Shown: positions 4,620 through 64,000, counted from the first letter of the stretch. The stretch is DNA of 64,000 nt from Dicyema japonicum (GCA_011109175.1 RDEW01000024.1:62001-126000), one strand, 5' to 3'. Made by a program: numbers and translations. Notes: generated by a model not told the origin, from the sequence alone.

Positions 4620-6610
4620 TTCTAGTGGCAGACCCACCTTACTCAAAAGGTTCTATATTTTCATAATACCAGGAGAGGATAAATGTACTTAGATATGGGT
4701 TACGGCACGTGTCTGGACTACGGAATTAGCTAGTTTTGCTATATTCTCATCTTTGGAGGCATAAAGGAGACCAAACAAAAATCAGACGTCTAAGAAAGAT
4801 AAAATCAGAAACCAGGAATACAGACTAGTTATATGAGGAACTTCGGCAACAACGAAACCGAACATTATTAAAAATCAAGCAAACTCAGAAATCCCTATCG
4901 GCTAAAGAAATAGAAAAACAAATTGAAGACATTGAAAAATATAAAGATGGAGTTAAAATGTTCAAAGCTATTCAATTAATAAGAAAAAGAGTGCAAGCCC
5001 CATAATAATCAATGACATCCTTGGCAGAATAATTATCAATGAAAAGGACAAAGCAGCTACTATATCTGCTTATTACTATCATATGCTCAACTGGGACAAC
5101 GAAATAGGCTATAAATTTGGTGCACAAGTCAAGCATGGTTTGGACATCCCAATTAATACACAAGAAACACTGGGTATGCCCCAGTGAAGTTGGTAACAAT
5201 CATTACCAATATACTCAACAAAATATTTGAAGAAAACACTACGTTAGACATTGGCAAGGGTTGGTTAATTCCACTGCAAAAACCGGGAAAACCCAAAGGG
5301 CCCCTTTCCAACCTAAGACCAATCATCCTACTAACTACGCTGCGAAAAATCTTGTCAATCATTACATTGGAAAGAATCAAAGACAAGGTGGAGTATTTTC
5401 TGTCACCAGGACAAAGTGGTTTCCGGTCAGGCAGATCCACTGCCGATGTCATTTGGACACACAGATGGTCAAGTGCTCTATGCCAAAAATATAAAAAGTG
5501 CATAGATGTTCTCGGAATAGACATGTCCAGAGCGTTTGACTCAGTTCATAGAGGCAAACTTCTTGAAGTACTCACAAGCTTCCTAACAACGGATGATGTC
5601 AAAATTATACAAAAACTACTGCAGAATACGCAACTAGCAACCAAACTCGGAAAAACTACTTCAGAATTCTTTTATACTTCACGTGGAATTCCGCAAGGAG
5701 ACTCTTTGTCACCAGTTCTATTCATAATCTACCTGGAGGCTGCACTGAGAGATTTCAGGCCTTTAATTGAGAACAACAAAATAATCGAGTTAATATATGC
5801 AGACGATCTTGACTTTGTTTCTGAAGATGTTGAAATTCTTCATCACGTTCTCAAGAACTTACCAAATGCCTTTTCTAAATGGTTCTTAGTTGTCAACCAA
5901 GACAAAACTGAATATACAAAACTTGTACGAGTTGTACGCACTTACGATGAATCATGGAGAAGGCATAAAAAAGTTGGTTCACTACTTGGAGACTCAGAAG
6001 ATGTTACCCACAGAAAAATCCTTTCCACTGCTGCATATAAAAAATTCTTAACTATCTGGCGTTCTAAGAAGAGCATAACTACGAATACAAAGCTAAAATT
6101 GTATAAAACATTCGTGGTTCCAGTCCTGACATACAACTGTGGGACATGGGGGATTACGAAACGGGAAATGGACAATCTGGATCAATTTCATAGAAATCAA
6201 CTAAGAAACATCTTGAAAATACATTTCCCGAAAAAGATATCAAATTCAGCACTGTACAAAAGATGTGGCTTAGAGCCATTATCAGAGGAGATTCTCAAGG
6301 CTAAGTGGAGACTTTTTGTTCACATCTTACGAATGGATATGTTGACTCCACCAAACATTGCAATGGAGAACTATTTCGCACAACTGAAGGGATTATTCCG
6401 TGGCAGACCTAGAGTGACTTTGCGTTCAGTACTAAATGATGACCTAATCCGAATAAACAAAACTCTACGAAATTGTGAAGATCTTGACTCACTACGAGCA
6501 ATGGCCCGGAACAGGAGAACATGGAAGAGAATGTGTGGGAGGATGCTGGACGTGGCACAAGGGGAACTTAATTAATATAATTAATTTTTGATTTCCCGGG
6601 AGTGCTTAAA
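4620..6610 (+). mobile_element. RTE-clade LINE, internally deleted (APE mostly absent)
   Basis: Linker remnants followed by an intact RT ORF. Confidence 0.85.
5184..6575 (+). CDS. RTE-type reverse transcriptase (463-aa open frame)
   Basis: LRPIILL, QSGFRSGRST, IDMSRAFDSV, GIPQGDSLSP, YADD, RGRPR..W C-terminus typical of RTE. Confidence 0.95.
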   Translation: MKLVTIITNILNKIFEENTTLDIGKGWLIPLQKPGKPKGPLSNLRPIILLTTLRKILSIITLERIKDKVEYFLSPGQSGFRSGRSTADVIWTHRWSSALCQKYKKCIDVLGIDMSRAFDSVHRGKLLEVLTSFLTTDDVKIIQKLLQNTQLATKLGKTTSEFFYTSRGIPQGDSLSPVLFIIYLEAALRDFRPLIENNKIIELIYADDLDFVSEDVEILHHVLKNLPNAFSKWFLVVNQDKTEYTKLVRVVRTYDESWRRHKKVGSLLGDSEDVTHRKILSTAAYKKFLTIWRSKKSITTNTKLKLYKTFVVPVLTYNCGTWGITKREMDNLDQFHRNQLRNILKIHFPKKISNSALYKRCGLEPLSEEILKAKWRLFVHILRMDMLTPPNIAMENYFAQLKGLFRGRPRVTLRSVLNDDLIRINKTLRNCEDLDSLRAMARNRRTWKRMCGRMLDVAQGELN

Positions 6611-34859: not shown

Positions 34860-36860
34860 TATTATTATTACCCCCAGGATCACTGGGTTAAAGAAAAGAA
34901 ATAAAAGTTCTCATCTAACTAAGTGATCCTAGACCGACAAAGGAGAGGACGAGTCCAGTTGGGTCGAGAATCTTCTCATTGGACATGGCATCGGCTCAAA
35001 ACTTCTGATGATCGTAGATAATTCGATAGTGTATGGAATAGAGGGCAGCTCGGTGAAATAGCCTCCTTTAAGAGTTTCCGTTGTAATTCGACTAAGAAAT
35101 TTTCAATAGGCTAGATTTTGTGTTCTGATCCAATTAACTTTATTCAGTCCCCTAGATTGCAGATAGTTTCAATGAGGACGATCTTGAAATCTTCATTGCC
35201 CATGAAGGATTGCATACGTCATCGTTGGTCGGATAAATTGTTCATAAATCTTGGTAAGGCCACTAGTTGGTTTCTAAGTGTTTTTGAGAGCACTTTTAAA
35301 ATTCACATTTTTTTCAGAGCAGAAGTTACTTTGTTTTCAACATGTCGGATAAAGGTGAGTCCCTGATCAAAGGTTACTCCCAGAATATTCTGTTTTGTTA
35401 ATAGGAATAGCTTCGTTCTTCATAAAGAATTTGGTTACCTGTTTTTGTAGGTGGTAAACAGTGTGACAAAAGACCGCTTCGAGGATCATATTTAGCTTGT
35501 CGAGCATTTGTTGAACGGACTGAGTATCCTTGAGGGATCCCATTTGGGAAATAGCGAGATCTTGATTTGATGTTGTTGATGAGTACTTGTGGTCGTCTTC
35601 CATTTAGGAAGTTTCCAAGCCAAATTTTCAGGTTCGGATGGATGTTGGTTTCAAATATTTTCTTTGTTAGGAGTTTCCTAGGGACTGAGTCGAACGCTTT
35701 TGTAATGTCCACGGATATAAGTGCTGTCCTCTGATGGAGTTTGGGGGAGTTAAATCCTTCCGCAATGAATTGTGTGAAGGTTTTAAGGTGTGTTGTCAAA
35801 TGGTTATCCGGGAATCCGTGCTGGGTCAGAGGTATTGAGATTGAGTCTTGTATTTTTTTCCAAAACAAGCCTTTCAAGGATCCTTGAGACCGGACTTAGA
35901 ATATATATTAGGCGATAAAAAGATGGTTCATTTATTGGTTTGTTGGGTTTTCGGATAGGTCTGATTAGAGACTTCTTCCATCTTTCAGGGATTGTATTTG
36001 TGCTAATGGATAGGTTGAATATATAGGCTAATAGATCCAGAGTTCGATGGCCCTGGTGCTTCAGTTCATATGTGGTTATGTTGTCTGGTCATTTGGCCTC
36101 TGATCTGTTGGCTTTGAATATGGCTCTGCGAACATTTTGACTAGTAAATAGGATCAAGTCATCGGAGCGTTTCGTTTCAATCTTATTCAGGAATACTTAG
36201 TGTTCTTTTGAAAACTTCTTGTAGGAGATAGACGTGTAATATTTTATCAGAGTGTCTGGTTTTATGTAGACTTTGACAATTCTCTCTGGAGAGAATCTTT
36301 TGATGTTCTTGATCCACTTCCACACTCTCTACATTGGGTGGTTCTTGCAGAAAGCCTTCGATAACCTCGTCCATCTATTTGCATTTTCTGTCTTTCTGTT
36401 GTTGTCGATCTTTCTGTTCAATTCTTGAATTTTTCTGATGTTCTCTTCTGTTGGCGATTTTACCATCTTTAGATTATTTCGTCCTCTAATCAGATGTTTC
36501 GTCGTTGTGTTGAAACGTTTTGATGACGTAGTTGTTTCCCCATAGACAGCGTTTATGGTGGAGTTGAACCATTTCACTAATTGTTCGACGGAGGAAGGAT
36601 TGGGGAAATTTAATAGTCCAATACAATTATCGACGGAATCCTCTCCAATTCGCAAGGCAGTAGTTAGTTATCGTTGGGCATTGTCCCTTTATCCGTGACC
36701 TTGTTTTGACCTCAAAAAATATTGGATTGTAGTCACTCCTGGAGTCACACTTCACTGAGCAGTCAATAAAGTTGCCAAGGACGGTGATGACAATGAGATG
36801 TCGATAGAAATAGGTTTATCGTTACGTCGAGTAGGTGTCACACAAGAGATTATTAGTGGA
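34860..36860 (-). mobile_element. APE-RT-CCHC LINE, long degenerate copy
   Basis: VDITKAFDSV, WLGNFLNGR, GIPQG, C-terminal cysteine motif, 3' tail at 34860-34875. Confidence 0.9.
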
Positions 36861-60230: not shown

Positions 60231-60367
60231 CTGTTGATTGATAAGTATTCAATTTATTAACTACTCAAGACCTTTGATGTAGATTTCCTAAGTGCTTTGA
60301 GTGTTCGGATTAAATAAGGTCAAATTCTTATGGACATATCTATAATGCAGACTAACGTCACAATTAG

Positions 60368-60818
60368 ATGATACTCGAGAATGTTGTGTTATTTTTTACT
60401 ATTAAATCGGGTAATTTTAATATTTTGATTAATAGATATAGAAGAACTAGTATTAAACAAAGTATAAGCATTAAAGACTGACAGGTATAGATTGATGACT
60501 TCCCTAGCTTCTCACACGACATTGAAGACGACGGTATAATTGGTAATTTATGCTAGATACATCAGAAGAATTCGAAGAAGGTAAAATAACTACTCATTAC
60601 GGTAGATAATCCATATGAATTGGAGGGCGGTATAATATCTGGTCATTTGTATAGTTACTGAGGATGAATTCATGGAAGGTAGTGACTTATTTTTTCGCTA
60701 GCTTCCACTAATCAACTGGAGCCAAGTATAACGAGACAAAATTTCGGCAAGCTTATACTACAGGAGGTATAATGACTGGTCATTTCTAGAATATACCAAA
60801 CGACATGCAGAGTTATAA
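60368..60818 (+). CDS. Micro-exon gene 3' part encoding an acidic tail ending HAEL (ER-retention-like)
   Basis: Introns 60411-435, 60485-507, 60534-556, 60581-605, 60630-654, 60679-701, 60726-751 and 60767-789, all GT..AG; phase-1 exons of 24, 24, 24, 24 and 15 nt; one in-frame TAA at 60465; true start uncertain. Confidence 0.8.
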
Positions 60819-60949
60819 GGACAGTTTATTTAACACTTTAACGACTATTTAGTTCAACTAATATTAACTCCCATTAAGTCATTGCATCACACAAGGCTTG
60901 ATATATTCTCAAGTACCCACTCGTTTTTTGTTGCTTCATACAAAGCTCC

Positions 60950-61600
60950 ATTTAAAGTAAAATCAATAATTAGACTAAACCAGGGATTCCACACATCACC
61001 GAATAAGATGCAAGATCGCCTTGCCGGGTACATCAACCACTAGACGATATATTGCCCACAAATTGGAGGAAGAAATCAGTCATCGCGTATGAACTGAGCG
61101 ACTACCAGATTATACTTAAAACAGAACAACGCGGATGATATAGTCCTAGTATCTAGGGATGTGAGCATTATCGACTCGAATATTACAGGACAACCTGAAT
61201 AATCTGAGTTTGTGGCTTTACAAAAATCAATTGAGACCAACTCCACAGAAGTCAGTATTGACTCTTTTCACATCAAACAGAAGACTGGAAAAACTATTAA
61301 TCGACGTCAAATTAAACGGAAAAACTATCCCGCAAATCCTAGAAGATCCTCGGAGTTACCTTCGACACCTTAACCTTTTCGTCAATGTTGAAAAGGTAGT
61401 AAAGGATTATAAAAAAAGATTAACTTCATGAAGGTTTTCTGGGAAATTTAAAAACTCTAGAGGCCAAATTGGATACCCTCTAAAGGCAGTACATTGAACC
61501 TACAATTTATTATGCATGTGCTGCCTGGGGGACAAAACTTTCACCAACGAACTTGACCAAGATCTATAATATTCAATCAATGTCGACGAAACTATTGAGG
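60950..61600 (+). mobile_element. CCHC-family LINE RT/thumb relic
   Basis: ADDIVLVS, PQKSVLTLFTSNRR, YACAAWG. Confidence 0.8.
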
Positions 61601-62409
61601 AAGTCTTCTTGCAAGGAAATCCTGTCAGAAGCTTTGAACAGGATTAATGTGACTGTGAAATTTTCGTGCGTTGAACGCCGCGCCCTTATCGTAAATGTAC
61701 CGGAAAACTGTCTGAACACACGGAAAAGATGCGGAGACTGCTGAGGTAGATCAGGATAATTTTTTATTCGGCTTAGCAGTTTTTTTATTAATATAACAAT
61801 TAAACAAATGTCAGTTTCAGGAAGCCTGCTGCGTGGATTGCGAACGGGTTCCCTCGGAGTATGGCTATTCCAATCTTTTGTCTTAGCCATAACCCTTCTC
61901 GTTGATCCCTTTTCTTTCTTAGCAGTTAAAAATTTTTTTTTGAAATTTGCAATTTTCTTGTTACCTTAAAATTATGTTAACGCGATATGCTCTGGTGATA
62001 TCTTTTTTGGATATTATATGAACACTATTCCGCCGAAGACCTAGCACATTAATTCCTCTTAGAAAAGGGAATTCGTCTATGATGCAGCATCACTTGTCCA
62101 GAATGCTCTGAAACCTACCATGGATTCGTCTAATTTAAATCTGTGGTCGCCTGTGTTATTATTCACAAACATTACTCACCTCTAAGACACGACTGCTATC
62201 TTTATGGAAAAAGTAATCAAATATCAAAGATACAGTCAGTATATAAATATATTTTAATTTTAAATGTCTACGTTTATATTAGCATTATTAAATAAGGATC
62301 GACAGAGTTTTTCGATCTCCTCAATCTGTGCAGGTAGAAAGTACGTCCTTGCTGCAGGAAAATAGAAATCATAATCACCATTGATCTTTATTAAATTATT
62401 TGTAAATAC

Positions 62410-62839
62410 CTGCATTGTGCTATATATTGGGTCTATTACCCATGGAATCTCATTTACAAATGTTGTTTCTCCTGTTATGAAATAATACATCAACATCTCT
62501 TATATGCTCACATGACATTGGAATATTCTTTAATAGCTTCAACACTGCATGAGAAATAAGATACCTCAATACACTAATTTTTTACTTATACTTTATACCC
62601 GAAATATACACAATTGTCTTGTTTGTGTTTTAGTGAACTCATATCTCAATGATCTCTAATTATTTAACGAATGTGTTGTGCTAGCATCTTCCCTTTCTGG
62701 ATTTTTTAACTAACAAACTGTTTACTTTTTTCATATTTCTTTGACTGCATTTAATGCCATTTGCGAGCTACAATAACTATTATTAGATACATTTTAACCC
62801 GACACTTCTTCATTTTGTTTAAAACTCCATATATCCCAT
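62410..62839 (-). pseudogene. PRP8: PRP8 N-terminal fragment with tiny introns
   Basis: ARKWH*MQSKKY, IIRDH*DM, HAVLKLLKNIPM, ITGETTFVNEIPWVIDPIY match the Prp8 PRO8NT region; introns of 23 and 25 nt; multiple stops; truncated after ~120 aa. Confidence 0.9.
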
Positions 62840-62949
62840 TATTTGATTACTCGTGCAACAAACACTATTACAGTTAGTATTTTATATTTAATTTGTATTT
62901 TTTAATTATAATAAATTTTAACATTATTAATTAACATTTGTATTTCTTT

Positions 62950-64000
62950 ATGTCACAGAATGATACAAAGTCTGAAGTCGCTGAGATAATATGAATGTGT
63001 ATTTTTTGTCAACAAAACCACCGATTATCGCTATAATCGCAAGTGGTCATAGAGATCGCTAATTAAAGTGAGAACTCATGCAAACTCTTTATCTGAATTG
63101 AATCAACTTTTAATGATATGTGTTGTAGAAATCCTCGTTTCTGACTGTTTTGACGTTTATTTTAGTTCCCTAAAATATTTTATGGTCCTCCTTAATTGAT
63201 TGATCTGTTGATATTTTTTTTCGAGTTCGATTCAACTTCCTTAAATTAATGCCCCACTTTTGTAGGCAACTGAGAATGATAAATCCTCAAACTATCTGTT
63301 CTGGATAATATTTTTATTCCCATCAAAATGTAGGTGTATGGTCGTTGTAGAAAACCACTTGTTTGTGATGAAAATTTTGTAAATTCTGTTAATGATTTGA
63401 TCGCCTCACTAGAAAACGAAAGCTATAATATGACTTTGTTGCTCTCTACCATTTCGAAATTTTACATGAGAATGTTCTATAATGATAAAGTCACTAACTT
63501 TACCGTATGTTCGTCAAATGACTTTTTTCTAACCAACCTGCTACTAAGTCATTTTTGTACGACATACTAGCGACAGTCAAAATTTTATCATATTTTATAA
63601 AGTTTACGTTAAAGATGTAATAAGCTATTATTACTTCCTGATGAGATTATCTGTGTTGGAATCGGTTTGATGACGTAATTTCATTCTTTCTTAATTGTGA
63701 AATTGGTTTTATTGCATTTGCTGATCAATTGACTGATAGTATTTTTAAAATATCAAACTTTCTGAAAAAAAGTATTTTTGGATTTACTTTGTTTGCTGGA
63801 AAGGTTAAGAATGCTAGAATTCTATTCAGGGAGAAAGATGCTCTTTCTCTAGAAATGTTGATTATGAACTGAAATTGTCTTCTCATATGTTATTGTAATT
63901 TTTATTTGTTTAGATAATCTGTCCAGCCCAGTTGGGTTGGTTTATTGTTTAAATTATCTGTCGTTAACCAGTCATTGGATGATTTATTGAGAATGTGGCA
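62950..64000 (+). pseudogene. Unidentified decayed gene head-to-head with the PRP8 fragment
   Basis: ATG at 62950; tiny introns gttaagaatgctagaattctattcag and gttattgtaatttttatttgtttag; many stops. Confidence 0.35.

Follow-up and report, generated by a model that had tools for sequence, protein, structure and literature searches.

A predicted family of tandem micro-exon genes in Dicyema japonicum

In a 64,000 nt stretch of the Dicyema japonicum genome (GCA_011109175.1, RDEW01000024.1:62001-126000; hereafter the window, with positions counted from its first nucleotide), we analyzed a ladder of micro-exons alternating with introns of the same small size, which forms part of a predicted small nuclear gene at 60368-60818 on the + strand. 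Comparison with other loci of the genome makes it very likely, as one joint conclusion, that the window harbors a genuine ladder architecture and that it belongs to a lineage-specific family, of which at least 12 array loci were found (the window and 11 others). The window copy itself is probably a diverged and 3′-truncated member of this mucin-like micro-exon family and would encode an acidic secreted peptide. We lean slightly toward the view that this gene is still expressed and maintained.

The ladder was described in an earlier note on this DNA as seven consecutive GT..AG segments, and reading of the sequence returned exactly the lengths claimed there. The segments at 60485-60507, 60534-60556, 60581-60605, 60630-60654, 60679-60701, 60726-60751 and 60767-60789 measure 23, 23, 25, 25, 23, 26 and 23 nt, in this order, and the pieces between them 26, 24, 24, 24, 24 and 15 nt, with a final piece that ends in the TAA at 60816-60818. 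Joining the pieces in the phase-1 frame yields FSHDIEDD / DTSEEFEE / DNPYELEG / VTEDEFME / ASTNQLEP / TYTTG / EYTKRHAEL followed by the stop, which is the acidic peptide ending in HAEL that the note had given. As for the other two frames of the spliced ladder, one contains eight stops and one is likewise stop-free. The resemblance among introns that had been noticed is visible as a 49 nt period, with three copies spaced 49 nt apart, and as 85% identity between the intron sequences at 60626-60651 and 60763-60788. The window ladder was not detected by Tandem Repeats Finder, and no match to Rfam was found in the window. Of 200 Markov-simulated 64 kb windows, both strands of which were considered, 1 contained six such introns in a chain whose exon lengths were divisible by three. 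Because of this low frequency and the presence of paralogous ladders at no fewer than 11 other loci, chance is excluded as the source of the window ladder.

These paralogous loci were obtained by scanning the genome for arrays and paralogs, as the earlier note had asked, and the scan recovered ladder arrays at at least 11 further loci. The repeated module consists of a 24 or 27 nt phase-1 exon and a 25 or 26 nt GTA..TAG intron, arranged in tandem in up to ~39 copies. The array at C321 contains at least 13 units of a 24 nt exon and a 25 nt intron, that at C338 contains ~31 units, and that at C246 contains ~39 units organized in a 102 nt super-unit of 27+26+24+25 nt. Other ladder arrays are located at C324, C345, C157 (868.7 kb), C365 and C150. 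Paralogs with 13-39 near-identical units support the proposal of the note that the array grew by duplication of an exon-plus-intron unit (~49 nt). The units encode Ser/Thr/Pro-rich, mucin-like repeats of 8-9 residues, e.g. ASTTPSTA, ASTTPSTTT and ASTTNLTN, and the paralogs are composed of S+T at 0.36-0.55 (about 0.5) and of D+E at no more than 0.12. In C321, C338 and C339, a predicted transmembrane helix exon and then a short basic tail follow.

The window gene shares not only the module but also the 5′ end of the family. Window positions 60301-60436, a block of ~135 nt upstream of the ladder, are 84-90% identical to C321, C338 and C339, and the block is also recognizable in C1, C135 and C246 in an alignment of seven loci including the window. 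It comprises an 18 nt motif, a TATA-like element, the ATG, a 43 nt hydrophobic first exon and a near-invariant 25 nt intron. The 18 nt motif, AAATMAGGTCRAATTCTT, occurs exactly seven times in the 67.5 Mb genome, every time at a family locus (60312-60329 in the window, C1:886531, C135:161372, C246:405671, C321:121442, C338:13283 and C339:155); it is located ~40 nt upstream of the ATG, with a ladder gene behind each occurrence, and is thus a candidate for a family-specific promoter element. The ATG and the 43 nt length of exon 1 are conserved in 7/7 loci with this promoter block. The first intron (60411-60435 in the window, and the same intron in C321, C338 and C339, also designated L012, L013 and L014, respectively) is more conserved than exon 1. 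This near-invariance suggests that the intron has a function in regulation or that the 5′ block has undergone gene conversion.

Paralog-guided model of the window gene

Gene models were guided by the paralogs in place of a longest-open-reading-frame (ORF) splice-path search. The latter was uninformative, since the abundance of GT and AG allows from thousands up to 1e14 splice paths, the longest of which retain introns. In the paralog-guided model, the window gene extends on the + strand from the ATG at 60368 to the TAA that ends at 60818 and is composed of nine exons of 15-43 nt and eight introns of 23-29 nt, with an ORF of 252 nt encoding 83 aa. All eight introns start with GTA; seven end with TAG and one with AAG.

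Upstream of the gene, the aligned block at 60301-60347 carries the 18 nt motif and, at ~60335-60346, the TATA-like element. Exon 1 (60368-60410, 43 nt) starts with the ATG and a hydrophobic stretch, MILENVVLFFTIKS, which resembles a signal peptide by inspection, and ends in phase 1. Intron 1 (60411-60435, 25 nt, GTA..TAG) is identical at 24-25 of 25 nt in C321, C338 and C339. Exon 2 (60436-60461, 26 nt, phase 1 to 0) was placed by enumeration of stop-free paths and has its counterpart in the 32 nt exon 2 of C338/C339. Intron 2 (60462-60490, 29 nt, GTA..TAG) aligns with the 26 nt intron 2 of these two paralogs, which starts with GTATAAGCA like the window intron 2, and belongs to the small number of routes by which the ladder frame can be entered without a stop. 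Exon 3 (60491-60533, 43 nt, phase 0 to 1) is open in frame and agrees in length and position with exon 3 of C338/C339.

This part of the model departs from the earlier note, in which 60485-60507 was taken as the first intron. Intron 2 overlaps the first 6 nt of that segment, and exon 3 contains the rest of it (60491-60507) together with the 26 nt exon proposed there. As the paralog alignment prefers the intron at 60462-60490 and the 43 nt exon at 60491-60533, the segment 60485-60507 is probably not an intron and would span the boundary between intron 2 and exon 3. Replacing it by intron 2 leaves the downstream frame unchanged. A model with an 8 nt exon (60477-60484), flanked by introns of 27 and 23 nt, also has an open frame; the 43 nt exon 3 was preferred, as it matches the paralogs.

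The ladder proper follows intron 3 (60534-60556, 23 nt, GTA..TAG), which aligns with the 24 nt intron after exon 3 of C338/C339. Four exons of 24 nt, all in phase 1-1, encode DTSEEFEE (60557-60580), DNPYELEG (60606-60629), VTEDEFME (60655-60678) and ASTNQLEP (60702-60725), the last of which is closest to the family units (cf. ASTTQLTN in C1). They are separated by intron 4 (60581-60605, 25 nt), intron 5 (60630-60654, 25 nt) and intron 6 (60679-60701, 23 nt), each of the GTA..TAG type. Intron 7 (60726-60751, 26 nt, GTA..AAG) precedes the exon encoding TYTTG (60752-60766, 15 nt, phase 1-1), which corresponds to a 24 nt family exon with an in-frame 9 nt deletion and whose local alignment to C339 scored 67 versus a shuffled maximum of 46. 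Intron 8 (60767-60789, 23 nt, GTA..TAG) is identical to a C338 ladder intron at 23/26 positions. The last exon with the stop (60790-60818, 29 nt) is homologous over 60790-60810 to the last ladder exon of C339.

Splicing and coding potential of the family arrays

Support for splicing and translation of the arrays comes from comparative sequence evidence. Among the segments between introns, 166/182 are multiples of three (24 nt in 84 cases and 27 nt in 66, plus 30 and 33 nt), and several of the exceptions are parsing errors. The ladder introns range from 22 to 29 nt with single-base differences (117 of 25 nt and 56 of 26 nt), and their GT and AG are invariant across 90 distinct intron variants. 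Through the large arrays, the phase-1 frame alone is stop-free: in C246 it contains 0 stops and the remaining frames 9 and 15, and in C135 the corresponding counts are 0 versus 2 and 13. The frame picked in the earlier note for the window is this same family frame. Similarly, among 138 substitutions between related exons, 0 touch a stop in the phase-1 frame versus 12 and 19 in the others.

The flanking exons are connected to the same frame. Upon reading of the sequence, the conserved ATG reaches the phase-1 frame via small introns, and this frame continues in C321, C338 and C339 to the exon for the hydrophobic helix and the basic residues. If left unspliced, each 49 nt unit shifts the frame, and a stop is encountered within the next unit.

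Several copies are irregular. The arrays at C157 (868.7-869.4 kb; L045, or C157b), C345 (L043) and C324 (L042) are devoid of the shared 5′ block and show 1-4 stops when read in the family frame; they probably represent either copies in decay or a subfamily driven by a different promoter. In C321, a unit near the array end (L012:1348-1396) lacks the acceptor (actag to actat), and splicing would have to skip the exon with a 74 nt intron, or else the frame would be broken. The 5′ blocks of C338 and C339 are nearly identical, and the transmembrane exon is intact in C338 (L013, reverse strand, 2503-2622) and split over two frames in C339 (L014:1065-1209). These two loci may be haplotigs or a recent duplicate, one copy of which is decaying. 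In C135 (L041, reverse strand, 2023-2240), two units with a 25 nt 'exon' are in frame only via a GTT donor, which gives a 9 nt exon and a 40 nt intron; such a damaged unit may be spliced around.

Acidic divergence and truncated 3′ end of the window copy

The composition of the window copy has shifted from that of the family. Following the first 14 residues, D and E account for 24/69 residues (0.35; P ~1e-10 to 1e-13 versus base composition) and S and T for 11/69, unlike the Ser/Thr/Pro-rich composition of the paralogs. The 5′ part of the gene, from the promoter motif to exon 3, is intact. The ladder is limited to five exons, and the interiors of its units are as identical to the family as shuffled sequences are, except for intron 8 at 60767-60789. 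Identity to the nearest unit is therefore unusable as a test of selection. Despite the diverged interiors, the boundaries, the exon lengths and the intron lengths (23-26 nt) have been kept.

The 3′ end of the gene is truncated. At 60811-60830, the alignment is to the intron that follows the last ladder exon of C339; in the window, its donor is changed from GCAG/GTAT to GCAG/AGTTAT (the slash marks the end of the exon). Because the donor of this last intron is lost, the frame extends across 5 nt of the former intron up to the TAA at 60816-60818. Homology to a retroelement begins at 60831, 13 nt past the stop, and the fragment (60831 to approximately 61560, + strand) replaces the rest of the gene. 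Its copies, which are 77-87% identical, are found at L002:1500-1790, L003:1500-1790 and L007, and its translated path includes a reverse transcriptase-like ADDIVLV stretch. By DNA and tblastn searches, the 3′ exons of the family including the transmembrane exon are absent from 60819-64000 of the window and from the next 10 kb.

The truncation also bears on the C-terminal HAEL, which the earlier note had likened to the ends that retain proteins in the endoplasmic reticulum (ER). Given the position of the stop within a former intron that is missing its donor, and the start of the retroelement at ~60831, HAEL is probably an accidental by-product of the truncation, not an ER signal. Of the supposed retention end, the final two sense codons belong, like the stop, to this former intron beside the retroelement. 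KDEL-type ER-retention ends follow the pattern [KRHQSA]-[DENQ]-E-L (PROSITE PS00014). HAEL deviates from this pattern by the A at its second position (-3), and no instance of HAEL as an ER signal was found in the literature searched.

Predicted splicing mode and product

The published assembly of D. japonicum comprises 67.5 Mb in 377 scaffolds, with a GC content of 36.7%, 49% repeats and a mean intron length of 38 nt (PMC6736024). According to a 2026 study, D. japonicum and the myxobolids are the only animals with introns of <30 nt, and of the splice signals in their introns of 20-27 nt only a 5′ GTa and a 3′ AG are left (PMC13644364). Since introns of this species are normally <30 nt, the 23-26 nt introns of the window are not an anomaly; introns of such lengths are the rule in D. 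japonicum, and the exon size is the unusual part. Thus, the ladder does not stand out as too tight for standard exon definition, as had been put forward in the earlier note.

Each ~25 nt intron would be recognized as a unit by intron definition, the normal mode in D. japonicum, and a splice site every 24 nt would then need no exon definition. Considering the footprints of the spliceosome and of the exon-junction complex, simultaneous processing of introns spaced by 24 nt is improbable, and neighboring introns are probably removed one after another in an ordered manner. At the 3′ end, the retroelement at ~60831 and the lost donor would let the frame run to the TAA and end with HAEL. The predicted product is a secreted acidic peptide of 83 residues without a membrane anchor.

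A more far-reaching scenario is tentative and, in our judgment, doubtful. The retroelement would have removed the anchor and converted a mucin-type coat gene into a living gene for a secreted acidic peptide with a new function, in which no exon exceeds 43 nt. The whole family would be spliced at every 49-52 nt module, with up to ~39 introns removed one at a time and in order from sites 24-27 nt apart, and occasional in-frame skipping would vary the repeat number. The spacing of 24-27 nt, which is closer than one footprint of the spliceosome or the exon-junction complex, would force such ordered intron removal.

Alternative explanations

Several observations weigh against a coding function of the family or of the window copy, and some of them would fit a degenerate non-coding satellite of 49-52 nt with incidental GT and AG, of which no array is spliced or translated. 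The arrays are indeed built of near-identical 49 or 102 nt units, and the unit counts are not independent because of these duplicates, leaving ~5-6 independent exon indels, which are all in frame. No synonymous excess was detected in any frame across the family exons, and the entropy by codon position showed no third-position peak in the coding frame. When the C321 transmembrane exon was searched against 1.84 billion representative proteins, one spurious repeat protein was returned and nothing related. In the absence of a synonymous excess, the coding case rests on stop avoidance, length classes and connectivity. Length changes by multiples of three are confined to the 'exon' part (21, 24, 27, 30 and 33 nt, and 15 nt in the window), whereas the 'intron' varies by 1-2 nt and retains GT and AG in all 90 distinct variants. 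A single frame is stop-free over hundreds of codons, unspliced units shift the frame into a stop within the next unit, and the arrays are flanked by the conserved TATA, ATG and signal-peptide exon and, in three loci, by an in-frame transmembrane exon. Such a non-coding satellite therefore seems extremely improbable. Constraint on the repeats appears to act on their composition and openness and not on the precise sequence, which fits a mucin-like domain and is weaker evidence than usual.

A coding family could still include a dead copy in the window, that is, a pseudogene relic from which the retroelement removed the 3′ exons and the anchor and which is now drifting with an open frame devoid of function. 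The loss of the 3′ half of the family gene with its anchor, no trace of which is present within 13 kb downstream, gives the copy the look of a pseudogene, as do the lost donor with the stop in the former intron and the retroelement adjoining this stop at 60831. The unit interiors are no closer to the family than shuffled sequence, and decaying arrays with stops exist elsewhere (C157b, C345 and C324). Nor is the open path very rare: from exon 1, the ladder can be reached without a stop by ten different routes, so that such a path is only moderately improbable, and the openness of the used frame weighs little since a second frame of the spliced ladder is stop-free. The GA-rich exons could reflect splicing-enhancer-like sequence instead of selection for acidic residues. 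On the other hand, 16/16 splice dinucleotides of the eight introns are intact though the intron interiors have diverged to noise, and the ORF is intact over nine exons, an openness that only 2.5% of exon-wise shuffles attain in the used frame. Indels within exons preserve the frame, as the 9 nt deletion does, and the 24 nt lengths have been kept as the introns drifted to 23-26 nt. In further support of a living gene, the promoter motif is matched at 18/18 positions, and both exon 1 and the intron behind it are conserved. The acidic enrichment is far beyond base composition and would not be expected from neutral decay in an AT-rich genome. Taken together, a functionless relic is possible but rather unlikely, and we favor a diverged, truncated copy that still codes for the acidic peptide.

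The earlier note had raised a possible combinatorial generator of isoforms. A reading in which symmetric 24 nt exons are skipped in many combinations and HAEL retains the acidic peptides in the ER is, in our view, improbable. The five consecutive phase 1-1 exons (24, 24, 24, 24 and 15 nt) could be skipped in frame, exon skipping is used by schistosome micro-exon genes and polymorphic mucins, and the first exon resembles a signal peptide by inspection. However, the intron to be removed upon skipping of a single exon would measure 72-76 nt, while introns in this genome cluster near 25 nt. The final EL and the stop are derived from former intron sequence that became exposed when the donor was lost and the retroelement inserted, HAEL lies off the PS00014 pattern and is not recorded as an ER signal in the literature searched, and the paralogs terminate with a transmembrane tail instead of an ER signal. 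Isoform generation by exon skipping would be possible but is unsupported.

Comparison with known systems

The likeness to schistosome micro-exon genes (MEGs) to which the earlier note pointed is apt, as is that to schistosome polymorphic mucins. The polymorphic mucins of Schistosoma mansoni (SmPoMuc) form a multigene family with a 5′ signal peptide followed by 0-20 tandem 27 bp exons that encode a mucin-like repeat, and MEGs, which carry most of their coding sequence in very small symmetric exons and have a signal peptide in the 5′ exon, use exon skipping and give rise to small secreted proteins of a parasite (PMC4015677). Like SmPoMuc, the Dicyema family has tandem 24/27 nt exons encoding Ser/Thr/Pro-rich repeats; this is a likeness in design, and no homology is claimed. 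Unlike in SmPoMuc, introns (25/26 nt) and exons of the Dicyema family are equally small, and the whole 49-52 nt module is a satellite-like repeat unit; the window copy is moreover acidic and truncated, not mucin-like. Alternative splicing and trans-splicing are documented for SmPoMuc, whereas the Dicyema family is known here from the genome sequence.

With MEGs, the window gene shares the small size of its nine exons, which are all ≤43 nt. Five of them are symmetric and cover 111/252 coding nt, and the start encoded by exon 1 resembles a signal peptide as judged by eye. Exon-skipping isoforms have been demonstrated for MEGs, and the window gene is known at the level of the genome. MEG introns are of ordinary, much larger size, and MEG micro-exons are not known to be tandem duplicates of one module. 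In contrast, the Dicyema ladder exons are copies of one unit and the introns span 23-29 nt. In this respect, the eight window introns (23-29 nt, GTA..AG) are like the ultra-short introns of D. japonicum and the myxobolid myxozoans; the study describing these introns covers the genome-wide intron size, but not arrays of such introns alternating with exons of equal size (PMC13644364). Our literature search found nothing linking dicyemids with micro-exons or mucins.

If spliced as implied, the family would have the most compact exon-intron architecture known to us in any animal, with exon and intron both of ~25 nt and repeated up to ~39 times. A protein-coding gene composed of such repeats would pass for a satellite and be missed by ORF callers and repeat maskers, and the family is probably unannotated in the D. 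japonicum annotation (5,012 genes). It would offer a natural test of the packing limit of splice sites, of the ordered removal of micro-introns and of the behavior of exon-junction complexes at a junction spacing of 24 nt. A parasite outside the flukes, the octopus parasite D. japonicum, would have arrived at the tandem-micro-exon mucin design of SmPoMuc and MEGs. The window copy would represent an evolutionary snapshot of a module array diverging from Ser/Thr-rich to acidic, and would illustrate how insertion of a retroelement can convert the gene of a coat protein with a membrane anchor into one for a small secreted peptide, or into a pseudogene.

Elsewhere in the window, two open frames, at 5184-6575 on the + strand and at 35398-35877 on the - strand, contain reverse-transcriptase domains (PF00078; E 5e-33 and 1e-8, respectively), consistent with a repeat-rich genome.

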